In this document: positions 5,924 through 54,903 of the stretch, in pieces
Layout: each line of letters begins with the position of its first letter
How positions within the stretch are numbered: the stretch's first letter is position 1
Assembly (NCBI RefSeq): GCF_000006765.1
Contig: NC_002516.2
From: Pseudomonas aeruginosa PAO1
GTDB lineage: Bacteria; Pseudomonadota; Gammaproteobacteria; Pseudomonadales; Pseudomonadaceae
Length of the DNA stretch: 64,000 nt
Direction: 5' to 3' (one strand)
Notes under the pieces: generated by a model
What the model saw: only the letters and a program-made list of their open reading frames with translations
Database searches by the model: none
Told to the model about the DNA's origin: nothing
Program-made: the position numbers and the translations under genes

Positions 5924-6409
5924 TCAGCGGCTGTCCCGGCAGTCGATCACGCTGGCGTTGGTGATGATGTCCCGGCTGTCGGTGTACAGGGTGATGCTGC
6001 AGAAATAGTCGAGGATGGTCTCGTTCTCGTAGTAGCCGGTCTTGCGATAGACCGCCTCGCTACTCACCGGCGCCATGCCGGCGACCCCCTGGCCACCGAC
6101 GCCGACCCAGGTCTCGCGCTGGCCGACGTACTCGGTGCCGGTCTGTATGAAGACCTTGTCCGGCCCCATGTGGGTCCGCACGCGGTTCCAGGCGTAGAAG
6201 CCGCCGCTACCGTAGGACGAAGGGCCGAGGCCCTGGTCGGGCTTGCCGAACAGTTCGAAGGCCTTGCCGGCGGGCTGGCCGATGAGCTTCTGCGCGGCGA
6301 CCTTGACCTCGTTGTCGCGATTCCCCGACTGACCGAGGGAGGCGCAGGCGCTGAGACCGAGGACGAGCAGGGCGAGACCGAAGGGCTTGATCGAGGGCAT
6401 GGCATTCAC
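5924..6409 (-). CDS. Hypothetical lipoprotein
   Basis: Signal peptide with lipobox LSAC and high-GC3 codons. Start could be 6400. Confidence 0.75.
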   Translation of the reverse strand: MNAMPSIKPFGLALLVLGLSACASLGQSGNRDNEVKVAAQKLIGQPAGKAFELFGKPDQGLGPSSYGSGGFYAWNRVRTHMGPDKVFIQTGTEYVGQRETWVGVGGQGVAGMAPVSSEAVYRKTGYYENETILDYFCSITLYTDSRDIITNASVIDCRDSR

Positions 6410-6481
6410 TCCGTTGAAATGCCGCAGGATGTTAGAGGTCCAGCCGGCTCGCGGCTATTAGCTCATTTGTGCTAGTGCCGC

Positions 6482-7429
6482 TCACTTCGCCAGGTGCCGC
6501 GCCTGTTCGGCATGTACGCTGGCCATGAAGGTCTGCATGGCCGAGGAGTGGACCCGGTTGCGTCGGGTGATCAGGCCGTAGGGCGGCAGGCGCGGCTCCA
6601 GCTGGATCGGCAGGATCGCCAGCAGGTGCTTGCCCGGGTAGTCCTCGATCACCGAGCGTGGAGTGATGCCGATCATGTCGGTCTGTTGCAGCAGGGAGAG
6701 CAGGGTCATGATCGAGGTGGTCTCGACGATACTGCTCGGCAGGTCGATGCGCGCATTGTGGAAGGCCTGGTTGACGATCCCGCGCATCGGGCTGGGGTGC
6801 TGCTGCAACACCCAGGTCAGCTCCTGCAACTCGCCCCAGTCCAGCTTGCGTGCCTGCGACAACGGGTTCTGCGCGCCGACCACCACGCAGAGTTCTTCCT
6901 CGCCGAGGCTGTCGAACACCAGGTCGTCGGTGCGCGCGCCGCTGGGGATGCGTCCGAGCACCACGTCCAGCTGGTCCTGTTGCAGGGCCTGGACCAGCAC
7001 GTCGCTGGTGTCCACCTGGATGCTCATCGACAGCCGTGGATGACTCTGCTTCAGGGTGGCGATGGTGCGCGTCAGCAGGCTCGAGGCCAGCGCCGGGATC
7101 GCTCCGACGGTGACCCGGCCGAGGTTGCCGGACTCCAGCGCGACCAGTTCCTCGCGCATCCCGGACAGCTCGGCGAAGATCATCCGCGAGTAATAGATCA
7201 GCGTCTCGCCGAAAGGCGTTGCGCGCATGCCGCGCGGCAAACGCTCGAACAACTCGACGCCGAGCAGGTCTTCGGCCTCGTGGAGCATCTTGGTCGCCGC
7301 CGGCTGGGTCATGCCGATCTCGTCGGCGGCGCGGCGCAGCGAGCCGAGTTCCTCCAGGGCCAGCATCAGGCGCAACTGGCGCAGGCGCAGGCGGCTGTGG
7401 ATGATGCTGGCGTCGGGAATCCGGGACAT
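6482..7429 (-). CDS. LysR-type transcriptional regulator (PA2206-like)
   Basis: HTH (LRLRQLRLMLALEELGSLRRAA..MTQPAATKML..E), LFERLPRGM and substrate-binding domain. Start at MSRIP (7429). Confidence 0.93.
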   Translation of the reverse strand: MSRIPDASIIHSRLRLRQLRLMLALEELGSLRRAADEIGMTQPAATKMLHEAEDLLGVELFERLPRGMRATPFGETLIYYSRMIFAELSGMREELVALESGNLGRVTVGAIPALASSLLTRTIATLKQSHPRLSMSIQVDTSDVLVQALQQDQLDVVLGRIPSGARTDDLVFDSLGEEELCVVVGAQNPLSQARKLDWGELQELTWVLQQHPSPMRGIVNQAFHNARIDLPSSIVETTSIMTLLSLLQQTDMIGITPRSVIEDYPGKHLLAILPIQLEPRLPPYGLITRRNRVHSSAMQTFMASVHAEQARHLAK

Positions 7430-26631: not shown

Positions 26632-26885
26632 CTGTGACACGAATTTCCCCATGTGGGGAGTCGACAGGTTTCTAGAAAAATAGTTCGATAAGTGTAGCGA
26701 CTTTCGTTTGCAAACCGCTACAAATAGCGCTGCGGGCCAACCAGCTGAGCTTTTCCAACACCTGACAGTGTGGAATAACGCTTCTCCGAGTTCCGGAATT
26801 AAGGGCGATGGTATCCACATATTATTTAGCGGGCGTGATAATTTTTTATCTGGCCCTCTTTATCGAAGGAGAGGGCCAGATAACA

Positions 26886-53074: not shown

Positions 53075-54076
53075 ATGAGCGCAGCGCCACCGGATATCCC
53101 CGCCCTGCCCGCAGGCCTCTGCTACGTCGACGACCGCCAGCCGGGCATCCGTCGACGCCGGCAGGGCAAGCGCTTCGTCTATTTCGATGCCGACGGCCAG
53201 CGCATCGGCGACGCCGAGGAGATCCGCCGGCTGGACAAGCTGGCCATTCCGCCGGCCTATCGCGAGGTCTGGATCTGTCCCGACCCCAACGGCCATCTCC
53301 AGGCCACCGGCCGCGACGCCCGTGGGCGCAAGCAGTACCGCTACCACCCGCGCTGGCGCGAGGTACGCGATGCCGACAAGTACGAGCGCCTGCTGCGCTT
53401 CGGCCAGGCGCTGCCGCGGCTGCGCCGGCACATCGACGCCCAGTTGCGCCTGCCCGGCCTCGGTCGCGACAAGGTGGTGGCCCTGGCGGTTGCGCTGCTC
53501 GACGCCACCCTGATCCGCGTCGGCAACCACCGCTACGCCCGCGACAACCGCTCCTACGGCCTGACCACCCTGCGTACCCGGCACGTGGACGTGAACGGCA
53601 GTCGCATCCGGTTCCGCTTCAAGGGCAAGAGCGGCATCGAGCACGACGTCAGCCTGGAGCATCCGCGCCTGGCGCGGGTGCTGCGGCGCTGCCTGGAATT
53701 GCCCGGCCAGGACCTCTTGCAGTACCTGGACGAGGACGGCCAGCCGCACCGCATCGGCTCCCACGACATCAACGAGTACCTGCGCCGGCATACCGGCGAG
53801 GATTTCAGCGCCAAGGACTACCGTACCTGGGCCGGCAGCGCGCTGGCGCTGGAGCGCCTGCGGCGTGCCGAAGCCGACGGGCTTGGCGCGGTGGTGGCGG
53901 AGGTCGCCGCCGAATTGGGCAACAGCGTGGCGATCTGCCGGCAATGCTACATCCACCCGGCGATCATCGAGGCCTACCAGGCCGGGCAACTGGGCCAGCT
54001 CAGGCGCGCCCGCAAGCGCCGCTGGCTGAGTGCCGAGGAAGCGACCCTGCTGGCCTTCCTCGACACGCCCGGCTGA
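53075..54076 (+). CDS. pslN: Type IB DNA topoisomerase (annotated PslN)
   Basis: IPPAY..VWI, GRDARGRKQYRYH, RVGN..Y...N.SYGLTTL, FKGKSG, AKDYRTW, and catalytic Tyr in CYIHP. Confidence 0.92.
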   Translation: MSAAPPDIPALPAGLCYVDDRQPGIRRRRQGKRFVYFDADGQRIGDAEEIRRLDKLAIPPAYREVWICPDPNGHLQATGRDARGRKQYRYHPRWREVRDADKYERLLRFGQALPRLRRHIDAQLRLPGLGRDKVVALAVALLDATLIRVGNHRYARDNRSYGLTTLRTRHVDVNGSRIRFRFKGKSGIEHDVSLEHPRLARVLRRCLELPGQDLLQYLDEDGQPHRIGSHDINEYLRRHTGEDFSAKDYRTWAGSALALERLRRAEADGLGAVVAEVAAELGNSVAICRQCYIHPAIIEAYQAGQLGQLRRARKRRWLSAEEATLLAFLDTPG

Positions 54077-54370
54077 TCAGTTGCCCGGGTGCGGATCGAT
54101 GCCGTGCCGGCGCAGCAGGCCGAGCAGGCGGCCAATCTCGGTCTGGCAGGCTTCCAGTTCCTTGCGCAGGGTGTGTTCGCGGCGCTGCTGCTCCAGCTTC
54201 ACGCGTTCGAGTTCGGCGCGCGCCTCACGGCGGATCTGCCGCTCGCGCTCCTTGTCGGAATGCTCGGCGCCGAGGGCCTCTTCGGCCTTGCGCGCGCGGT
54301 ATTCGCGCATCCGCTGGGCGGCCGACTTGGCCTTGCCGCTCGGCTTGGGCCCGGGTTTGCTGGCTTTCAT
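54077..54370 (-). CDS. Small basic protein with putative DNA-binding N-terminus and coiled coil (at the 'pslO' locus)
   Basis: MKASKPGPKPSGKAKSAAQRMREYRARK followed by a heptad-rich helix. GAGG SD just upstream of the ATG; stop abuts the TopIB stop. Confidence 0.65.
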   Translation of the reverse strand: MKASKPGPKPSGKAKSAAQRMREYRARKAEEALGAEHSDKERERQIRREARAELERVKLEQQRREHTLRKELEACQTEIGRLLGLLRRHGIDPHPGN

Positions 54371-54377
54371 GAACGCC

Positions 54378-54429
54378 TCTATCTGCGTAACGTTACGCAA
54401 TCAGAATAGCGTAACGTTACGCAGATAGA
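54378..54429. repeat. Perfect 21-bp inverted repeat, each arm containing the palindrome GCGTAACGTTACGC
   Basis: TCTATCTGCGTAACGTTACGC-aatcagaata-GCGTAACGTTACGCAGATAGA, read directly. Confidence 0.95.
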
Positions 54430-54441
54430 CAGGGTCTATGC

Positions 54442-54903
54442 TTAGAGCGGCGGGGCCGAGCGCAGCATCACCGACTTCAGCGCGAAGGCCGACTTGATGC
54501 CAGCCACGCCGGGAATGCAGGTCAGGGTATTGGTGAGGAACGCCTGGTAGGCGGCGAGATCCTTGACTACAACCCGCAGCATGTAGTCCGCATCGCCGGT
54601 CATCTGGAAACAGCTCATGACCTGCGGCGCATCGACGATGCGTTCCTCGAAGCGAGCGAGGTAGTCGCCGGTCTGCTTTTCCAGGGACACCGAGACGAAC
54701 ACGCTCATCGCCCCGGACAGGCGCTCCTCGTCGAGCCGGGCGAAGTAGCCCTGGATGTAGTGTTCCTCTTCCAGGCGGCGTACCCGGCGCAGCGTCGGCG
54801 TCAGCGACAGGCCGACCTTCTGGGCGAGATCGCGCCAGCTCAGGCGGCCGTCGTCGGCCAGGGCACGGAGGATTTTCAGGTCGATGCGGTCGAGTTCAGC
54901 CAT
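54442..54903 (-). CDS. bkdR: Lrp/AsnC-family activator BkdR
   Basis: LDRIDLKILRAL..DGR, LSLTP.LRRVRRLE motifs; divergent from the bkd operon. Confidence 0.95.
   Translation of the reverse strand: MAELDRIDLKILRALADDGRLSWRDLAQKVGLSLTPTLRRVRRLEEEHYIQGYFARLDEERLSGAMSVFVSVSLEKQTGDYLARFEERIVDAPQVMSCFQMTGDADYMLRVVVKDLAAYQAFLTNTLTCIPGVAGIKSAFALKSVMLRSAPPL

Follow-up and report, generated by a model that had tools for sequence, protein, structure and literature searches.

Which gene occupies the interval called 'pslO' between bkdR and the topoisomerase IB gene ('pslN') of Pseudomonas aeruginosa, and what is the role of the large inverted repeat found in front of it? We analyzed this locus in 64,000 nt of strain PAO1 (contig NC_002516.2, assembly GCF_000006765.1), hereafter the window, in whose numbering all positions are given. 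An earlier note on this DNA had proposed that a minus-strand open reading frame (ORF) of 97 amino acids (aa) specifies a DNA-binding protein which regulates itself through a tandem operator, or else that a cruciform or RNA switch hides the Shine-Dalgarno (SD) sequence. The first of these proposals is the best explanation of our data: with a probability of roughly 0.7, the locus holds an autoregulated oligomeric DNA-binding protein with a tandem operator, as an orphan cassette of filamentous-phage type that is maintained by selection. Support is provided by selection on the minus frame, conservation of a basic peptide motif, co-occurrence of this motif with the palindromic site and the promoter position in relatives, and it is from these that we infer DNA binding, oligomeric state and stoichiometry, repression of the own gene and any role beyond self-control. 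The filamentous-phage type, a pair of 10-mers as the conserved unit and the presence of motif and element in replication initiators go beyond what the earlier note contained.

Base composition and substitution pattern were analyzed for both strands of the interval. The guanine-plus-cytosine (GC) fraction by codon position of the minus frame (0.755/0.48/0.857) was similar to that of topoisomerase IB, bkdR and bkdA1, while the plus-strand ORFs exhibited no such pattern. The P. paraeruginosa ORF differed at nine bases, all of them third positions of the minus frame and all synonymous, and the encoded protein was identical; read in the three plus frames, the same differences altered 9, 2 and 9 residues. 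Selection, as far as these substitutions indicate, acts on the minus frame only, and the 97-aa ORF is evidently a real gene. The exact protein was present on more than 1000 P. aeruginosa contigs, with frameshifted versions being rare, and among 185,579 species, each represented by one genome, P. paraeruginosa was the only other one with the gene. A candidate for a diverged orthologue (P0005/L334) was rejected, since 140 of its 146 differences (14.7%) were transitions, which points to a hypermutated or artefactual contig; L334 (Logan SRR9087304) is 990 nt long and in its entirety a copy of the P. aeruginosa bkdR-ORF-topoisomerase IB region.

None of these properties connects the gene to Psl. 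No enzyme family of Pfam or NCBIfam matched the 97-aa protein and no likeness to polysaccharide enzymes was apparent, while pslM, pslN and pslO are dispensable for Psl (PMC12690498, PMC7550585). Together with the nine synonymous differences this bears out the suggestion that the interval called 'pslO' carries a minus-strand gene, apparently of a phage regulatory type, that has nothing to do with Psl. Public sources name the protein 'hypothetical protein' or, wrongly, 'inner centromere protein' (several copies in NCBI and UniRef), a misnomer driven by the coiled coil. The literature on the DNA motif and on PA2245/pslO yielded nothing about this element. Exact look-ups and a homology search for a plus-strand 'PslO' protein were empty.

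The inverted repeat upstream of the gene is present exactly as first described, with complementarity that is perfect over 21 nt and a 10-nt loop. It is the sole perfect inverted repeat in the window with arms of at least 16 nt and a loop of at most 30 nt, and even 14-nt arms are expected by chance only 0.02 times per 64 kb (100 Markov-1 simulations). The second-best perfect inverted repeat (26846-26883, TTATCTGGCCCTCT / AGAGGGCCAGATAA, 14-nt arms, 10-nt loop) is located in an AT-rich stretch. Each arm contains one copy of the self-palindrome GCGTAACGTTACGC, so that two identical dyads lie 24 bp apart, counted start to start, and no further copy was detected in the window with up to two mismatches allowed. 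The gene-proximal palindrome ends 14 nt before the ATG, and the arm that contains it extends over the SD region, sharing 2 nt with the GAGG at 54379-54376; in most other strains and in P. paraeruginosa the SD reads GGAG(G).

Sequence conservation resolved this structure into a constant and a variable part. The proximal palindrome was invariant in P. paraeruginosa and the sampled P. aeruginosa strains, and the sole change in the distal palindrome fell outside its invariant core, at 54421 in P. paraeruginosa. Both 10-mer cores (GTAACGTTAC) and the spacer between them remained unchanged in this comparison, while 37 flanking nt carried six substitutions and the outer 7 nt of the arms had one or two in other P. 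aeruginosa strains and in P. paraeruginosa. As the outer arms differ between strains, the perfect 21-nt hairpin is specific to the strain of the window, and it is the paired 10-mer cores, rather than the hairpin, that form the conserved unit. The link between repeat and ORF that had been supposed earlier holds for the ORF, the cores and the spacer, all kept in P. paraeruginosa, and fails for the perfect arms. By contrast, the stretch of five codons that separates the proximal palindrome from the ATG varies in P. paraeruginosa, in support of a start at the ATG at 54370 rather than at an upstream TTG.

The basic motif at the N-terminus of the protein (KPGPKPSGKAKSAAQRMREYRARK) follows the form G-x-P-x-x-G-x-A-x-(T/S)-x-A-(E/Q)-(R/K)-x-(R/K)-x-Y-R-x-R. 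Its 23 residues KPGPKPSGKAKSAAQRMREYRAR were identical in the inovirus protein P0017 and showed one substitution (Q to E) in P0018; both are short proteins that have only the N-terminal KPGPKPSGKAKSAA(Q/E)RMREYRAR in common with the window protein. A hidden Markov model (HMM) of the motif, built from 19 diverse members that do not include the window protein, P0017, P0018 or L076, matched a single one of the 758 window frames, the 97-aa ORF (E = 1.4e-7). AlphaFold2 (mean predicted local distance difference test score 88) predicted a coil (residues 1-16) followed by a single helix (residues 17-88), which starts exactly at AAQRMREYRARK and whose last three heptads are hydrophobic. The basic motif and the coiled coil noted earlier were thus both recovered.

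Beyond the motif, the protein resembled no described family. It matched no family in Pfam or NCBIfam and no PDB sequence, Foldseek returned nothing significant, and the only matches in PHROGs were weak and non-significant (terminase small subunit, E = 0.04; replisome organizer, E = 0.48) and served as leads only. An exhaustive HMMER search of 1.8 billion representatives revealed no full-length relative outside P. aeruginosa; apart from fragments from P. aeruginosa itself, its only matches were P0018 and an odd protein of 226 aa in which the motif occurs twice. This last protein (P0022) has a non-bacterial look and contains TAAERMREYRARKKK twice, each copy followed by KRSAAERAKEY, and the basic motif may be used outside phages. 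By tblastn, the 97-aa protein had no match in annotated phages or annotated plasmids, and P0017 was likewise unmatched in the phage collection. Regarding known DNA-binding folds, no helix-turn-helix (HTH) family of the CI/Cro or Xre kind was found in Pfam, NCBIfam or PHROGs and the predicted model is without an HTH. The N-terminal beta-strand and two short helices of ribbon-helix-helix proteins (CopG/Arc/MetJ) are replaced by a coil and one helix in the model, and Pfam gave no match to this family. The G-R-P core of an AT-hook with its basic flanks is absent from the window protein, which reads KPGPKPSGK, and occurs as RGRP in the relatives L076, L080, L301 and L315; the KPGPKPSGK arm may be similar to an AT-hook in its action.

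The motif and the palindromes share a common context in filamentous phages. P0017 is encoded in the inovirus prophage L001 (REP_ORF2-G2P, coat B, Zot), with GCGTAACGTTAC and CCGTAACGTTACGG in front of its gene at a distance of 25 bp from each other. In a DNA alignment of the window with L001, the ATG is at the corresponding position and the spacer and both palindromes have their counterparts, the proximal palindrome aligning with CCGTAACGTTACGG, the distal one with GCGTAACGTTACCC and the spacer CTATTCTGATT with CTATTGCTAATT. The 23 motif codons exhibited many synonymous differences between the two while specifying the same residues, which indicates that the frame is translated and the peptide constrained in distant genomes. 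Similarly, one copy of GCGTAACGTTACGC precedes P0018 in L002, with the same motif. Judged by these alignments, operators, spacer, start and motif together form a cassette that has a homologous regulatory counterpart in inoviruses from Pseudomonas- and Stutzerimonas-like hosts. No phage genes were found around the P. aeruginosa copy, whose neighbors are topoisomerase IB and bkdR, and the order bkdR, ORF, topoisomerase IB was the same in other strains and in P. paraeruginosa; we therefore regard it as an orphan copy, which stands alone in the chromosome outside any prophage and, by its substitution pattern, under purifying selection.

L001, the prophage with the closest cassette, contains a separate HTH-type repressor-like gene at its other end, and three ORFs encoding small membrane proteins follow the motif gene (regions 153-557 on the minus and 6186-6777 on the plus strand); the motif protein may consequently control an accessory module rather than lysogeny. 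In the 6.8-kb inovirus contig L076, a 62-aa motif protein (RRRGRPATGKAKTAAQRMREYRQRR, 87-275) overlaps the start of a replication gene (274-1572) by TAATG, and no GTAACGTTAC was detected in the 6.2 kb examined, which leave out 553 nt upstream of the gene. The family of L315 type comprises 265 members, all 'hypothetical' and without a Pfam match, mostly from contigs of about 7 kb or from Stutzerimonas or Pseudomonas genomes, and in the model of L315 a disordered arm with RGRP leads into a basic helix of 15 residues, which a coiled coil follows. Neither site nor motif was found in Pf1 and Pf3.

Co-occurrence of site and motif was analyzed from both directions. Searches with the pattern GTAACGTTAC-N8-24-GTAACGTTAC yielded at least 120 loci from metagenomes and at least 117 from viruses; the sequences, 175 of them distinct, ranged in GC content from 0.29 to 0.69. 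Starting from the site, [RK]x[RK]xYRx[RK] was located within 250 nt in 25 of the 237 listed tandem loci, compared to 19 of 3600 control windows from the same loci (0.5%), which amounts to an enrichment of about 20-fold for the motif at tandem GTAACGTTAC loci. Since this strict expression misses true members such as MTAAERQRRRRAK and TPAQKQAAYRDR, the 25 loci are an undercount. Starting from the protein, with an alignment of small motif proteins as query, all 13 motif-bearing loci on viral contigs of 4-9 kb held GTAACGTTAC, and each of the seven ORFs mapped in detail had a copy in front of its ATG, as in the case of GGTAACGTTACTATAAT at a distance of 48 nt. The palindromes in relatives are placed directly upstream and are usually two, 20-28 bp apart, an arrangement that the window shares with its two copies at 24 bp. 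The neighboring rolling-circle Rep genes of site loci fell into four families (Rep_trans, Phage_CRI, REP_ORF2-G2P and Rep_1) or were absent, and Zot was often present; as the Rep families vary while the small motif gene is constant, the site appears to follow the small gene, which argues against an origin function.

The motif gene of the relatives has near-consensus sigma-70 promoters, and the two sites either flank these promoters or overlap with them (Table 1). The layouts were either -35, site 1, -10, site 2, SD and ATG or site 1, -35, site 2 and -10. Sites over the own promoter are the usual arrangement for a self-repressing repressor. For the window, the best candidate identified by eye is the weak CTGTCT-N18-TATTCT, which would place the -10 in the spacer as in the relatives.

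The mechanism we propose for the window gene combines these elements. A disordered basic arm (KPGPKPSGKAK) and a basic helix (SAAQRMREYRARK) would form an N-terminal module that reads GTAACGTTAC, and oligomerisation would be mediated by the long helix at the C-terminus. With the two palindromes directly upstream of the start codon as a tandem operator, occupation of these sites would block the promoter and 5' end of the gene, resulting in negative autoregulation. Filling both dyads would require four copies of the motif, as a dimer of dimers.

Several observations weigh against this interpretation. The promoter scan of the window revealed no sigma-70-like promoter, and the gene may depend on read-through or co-transcription from bkdR. 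The spacing between the two sites ranges from 20 to 28 bp among relatives, which means that there is no fixed helical phasing. The 97-aa protein escapes detection by an HMM confined to the narrow L315 family, and the homology consists of about 24 residues and the DNA alignment. Neither the 64 kb of the window nor the 16 kb analyzed from P. paraeruginosa contained a further site of GTAACGTTAC type, and no regulon is visible there. Finally, approximately 104 of the 237 listed tandem loci are inside terminase small subunit genes (PF10668) without the motif, and other proteins may read the same site. GTAACGTTAC is thus a widely used phage recognition sequence that is not exclusive to the motif, which limits how far binding by the 97-aa protein can be deduced from it.

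The occurrence of the motif itself extends to tailed phages. It was found in replication initiators of PHROG families, including one with a DnaT domain (L055), where it is followed by arrays of 5-21 copies of GTAAC/GTTAC at a density 6-20 times that outside the gene, including the exact 14-mer. These arrays suggest an origin inside the initiator gene. The exact 14-mer had 73 matches in IMG/VR, which by a rough estimate is about the level of chance, and four of these lie in motif-bearing initiator genes. The sites in terminase genes (for example L215 2749-2779, L203 5191-5222, L095 4525-4555, L256 2101-2134 and about 100 more within L078-L314) were mostly spaced by 21, 22, 24 or 33 bp, encode ...SNVT..(G/K)SNVT... 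just after the HTH helix and come from very diverse phages with GC contents of 0.29-0.69. In L215, the N of NVT is encoded by AAC and the neighboring N codons are AAT, a codon choice that suggests a constraint at the DNA level; the tandem sites in these genes may be a packaging recognition site.

Tentatively, and at odds clearly below even, we consider a broader model in which the module of about 24 residues (a basic arm and a helix of the form A-E/Q-R/K-x-R/K-x-Y-R-x-R) is an undescribed portable and sequence-specific reader of GTAACGTTAC that is common to inovirus regulators and tailed-phage initiators and has been grafted onto unrelated oligomerisation domains. One copy would have been domesticated in P. 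aeruginosa, where, in addition to its self-control, it might repress incoming filamentous phages with the same operators and thus serve as an immunity repressor encoded in the chromosome, with no prophage involved. Hundreds of filamentous-phage genomes and several initiators have in common a short peptide motif and a palindrome of 10 bp for which neither Pfam nor the literature offers a description. If the proposed binding is true, a compact DNA-reading module would be added to the known set, and operators and promoters would be supplied for a large group of uncultured inoviruses. The locus would also be an example of domestication, in which purifying selection keeps a phage regulator as a lone gene in both P. 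aeruginosa and P. paraeruginosa, and it raises the question of an effect on filamentous phages. Such phages matter for P. aeruginosa biofilms.

The positions of the individual features are compiled in Table 1. In the window, the stop codons of the ORF (54079-54077) and of the convergent topoisomerase IB gene (54074-54076) adjoin with a gap of 0 bp, as had been read before, and jointly form TGATCA. On the other side, 12 nt separate the bkdR stop from the repeat.

Table 1. Coordinates of the 97-aa gene, its upstream element and neighbors in the window, and of promoters and initiator genes in related elements.
Feature	Position	Strand	Remarks
97-aa ORF, gene of the interval (stop codon included)	54077-54370	-	Codon-position GC, synonymous differences, contig count
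Basic motif KPGPKPSGKAKSAAQRMREYRARK	54287-54358	-	Codons 5-28; identity to P0017, motif HMM
Predicted single long helix	54107-54322	-	Residues 17-88: basic helix, then charged helix, then C-terminus with hydrophobic heptads
SD sequence GAGG	54376-54379	-	5 nt before ATG; overlapped by arm over 2 nt
Whole inverted repeat	54378-54429	.	Perfect 21-nt arms 54378-54398 (TCTATCTGCGTAACGTTACGC) and 54409-54429 (GCGTAACGTTACGCAGATAGA), 10-nt loop 54399-54408
Gene-proximal palindrome GCGTAACGTTACGC, proposed operator O2	54385-54398	.	Core GTAACGTTAC 54387-54396
Distal palindrome GCGTAACGTTACGC, proposed operator O1	54409-54422	.	Core 54411-54420
Spacer TATTCTGATT (minus strand)	54399-54408	-	Holds best -10-like hexamer TATTCT 54408-54403; read by eye and by analogy with relatives
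Topoisomerase IB gene ('pslN')	53075-54076	+	Convergent; Pfam Topoisom_I and Top1B_N_bact
bkdR (Lrp/AsnC family)	54442-54903	-	Upstream, same strand; Pfam AsnC_trans_reg and HTH_24
L146 promoter			TTGACA-17-TATAGT, 11/12
L163 promoter			TTGACA-18-TATGAT, 11/12
L001 promoter			TTGCTA-17-TATTAT, 9/12
Initiator gene with motif and arrays, L013	2323-3144		
Initiator gene with motif and arrays, L028	1720-2613		
Initiator gene with motif and arrays, L055	1254-2474		
Initiator gene with motif and arrays, L071	4655-5632		
Initiator genes with motif and arrays, L079, L137, L272 and L292			

Among the other explanations for the locus, a function at the RNA level holds up best, even though we consider it unlikely. 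The palindromes would matter here as a stem and not as protein sites, and the hairpin in bkdR read-through transcripts would insulate, stabilise or stop them in the manner of a terminator, besides hiding the SD of the ORF. Read-through RNA of the minus strand would indeed fold into a very stable hairpin (-44.5 kcal/mol, z = -7.2) in which both G's of the SD are paired, and which begins shortly after the bkdR stop on the same strand. The lack of a promoter in the scan fits this explanation, as do the three arm substitutions outside the 10-mer cores, all of which keep G-U pairing on the minus-strand RNA; the probability of three wobble-compatible changes out of three is, however, 1/8 by chance. 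An intrinsic terminator is not apparent, since the stem of the 21-bp hairpin, though present, is not followed by a T-run on either strand, in agreement with the earlier reading for the bkdR side, and the terminator scan flagged only a small 5-bp hairpin of one palindrome. Rfam contained no family for the repeat, the best matches being generic hairpins of miRNA-precursor models that scored 33 bits against thresholds of 95-110 bits. It is the sequence of GTAACGTTAC, not mere pairing, that is conserved across very different elements (GC 0.45-0.69) in which spacing and flanks vary, and the outer arms that would complete the stem vary between strains. The predicted promoter of the relatives is positioned between or over the sites, so that the upstream site is not part of the mRNA and the long hairpin cannot form. 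Of the cruciform or RNA switch suggested initially, the predicted stable fold and pairing of the SD stand, and the switch itself is weakened by the missing U-tract, the lack of an Rfam family and the variable outer arms. The hairpin may be an extra layer alongside the operator in P. aeruginosa, not the core mechanism.

Quite improbable is a decaying relic, in which the locus would be the functionless leftover of an old filamentous-phage insertion and the ORF translated little or not at all. Such an origin would agree with the restriction of the gene to the P. aeruginosa group, the lack of distant full-length relatives, the absence of phage genes around the ORF, a promoter that looks degraded compared to those of the relatives and the frameshifts in a few strains. 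Decay is difficult to reconcile with nine synonymous and no non-synonymous differences to P. paraeruginosa, with intact copies on more than 1000 contigs, with an SD that is kept or shifted to GGAG in other strains and with operator cores that are invariant between variable flanks.

We assign a very low probability to the possibility that the palindromes are what remains of a filamentous-phage packaging signal or replication origin (single-strand or rolling-circle), read by a Rep or packaging protein and not by the small protein. The relatives are single-stranded DNA phages, a group that uses hairpins as origins of replication and as signals for packaging, their sites are near Rep genes, and 10-mer arrays occur inside initiator and terminase small subunit genes of tailed phages. 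The same 10-mer is nevertheless found beside four unrelated Rep families as well as without any Rep and tracks the small motif gene, its sites overlap sigma-70 promoter elements of that gene, and the cores are conserved in P. aeruginosa despite the lack of a Rep or packaging gene. A plus-strand gene of 132, 106 or 142 aa with the minus ORF as its shadow is scarcely credible, because the open frames at 54030-54428, 54089-54409 and 53944-54372 that would allow it are usual in GC-rich DNA, lack gene-like codon-position GC, are altered by the P. paraeruginosa substitutions that leave the minus frame intact, match no family and have no exact counterpart among 15 billion sequences, with two fragmentary matches and no real relatives for the 132-aa frame.

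With an autoregulated protein on a tandem operator as the preferred explanation, the cassette can be compared to known systems. Phage repressors such as lambda CI/Cro, RstR of CTXphi and Pf4r of Pf4 control their own gene via tandem palindromic operators over the promoter. The window cassette is similar in combining a small gene of phage regulator type with two dyads 2-3 helical turns apart that would lie on the -35/-10/+1 region of its own promoter, and a start codon that is leaderless or nearly so is a further likeness for the relatives L146 and L001. In contrast to these repressors, the 97-aa protein has neither an HTH nor any Pfam domain, its proposed reading element is an N-terminal basic arm followed by a helix, and the P. 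aeruginosa copy is located outside a prophage.

The resemblance to eukaryotic bZIP proteins concerns the mode of action, not the family. A basic segment runs unbroken into a long predicted helix with hydrophobic heptads at its far end, and the target is a short palindrome with a central CG. In true bZIP proteins (bZIP_1/bZIP_2) the signature of the basic region leads directly into a leucine zipper, and with E values up to 1 admitted Pfam assigned the 97-aa protein to no bZIP family. Its heptads follow the basic segment at a distance of about 40 residues of charged helix, the spacing of its AA...YR differs from the bZIP signature, the half-sites GTAAC|GTTAC are oriented opposite to TTAC|GTAA, and relatives of the motif bear unrelated C-terminal domains.

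Phage replication initiators (lambda O type; DnaD-like and O-like in PHROGs) contain the motif as SAAERQRRYRQRK, NAERQRRYRDR, SADRQRRYRER or TAAERMRNYRER and, after it, clusters of GTAAC/GTTAC including the exact 14-mer. These proteins have 250-400 aa and include initiator and DnaT/DnaD-type domains, the repeats are arrayed within the coding sequence, and the motif alone is what the 97-aa protein has in common with them.

Finally, the L315 family (MIDPADK...KRKRGRPATGKAMTPAEKQRAYRER...) and the small proteins of L145/L146/L078 type (M..TPAEKQRAYRxR...WQESERGE) differ from the window gene in that they show no detectable similarity to its product beyond about 24 residues, are encoded in phage genomes of 6-9 kb beside Rep and Zot and read RGRP where the window protein has PGPKP. 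What they have in common with it is the N-terminal basic motif, upstream GTAACGTTAC sites, which in these relatives lie on the promoter, and a helical or coiled-coil remainder. Motif and upstream sites characterise the inovirus basic-motif regulator plus GTAACGTTAC operator cassette, a family that we delimited in the present analysis and that is contained in no database.

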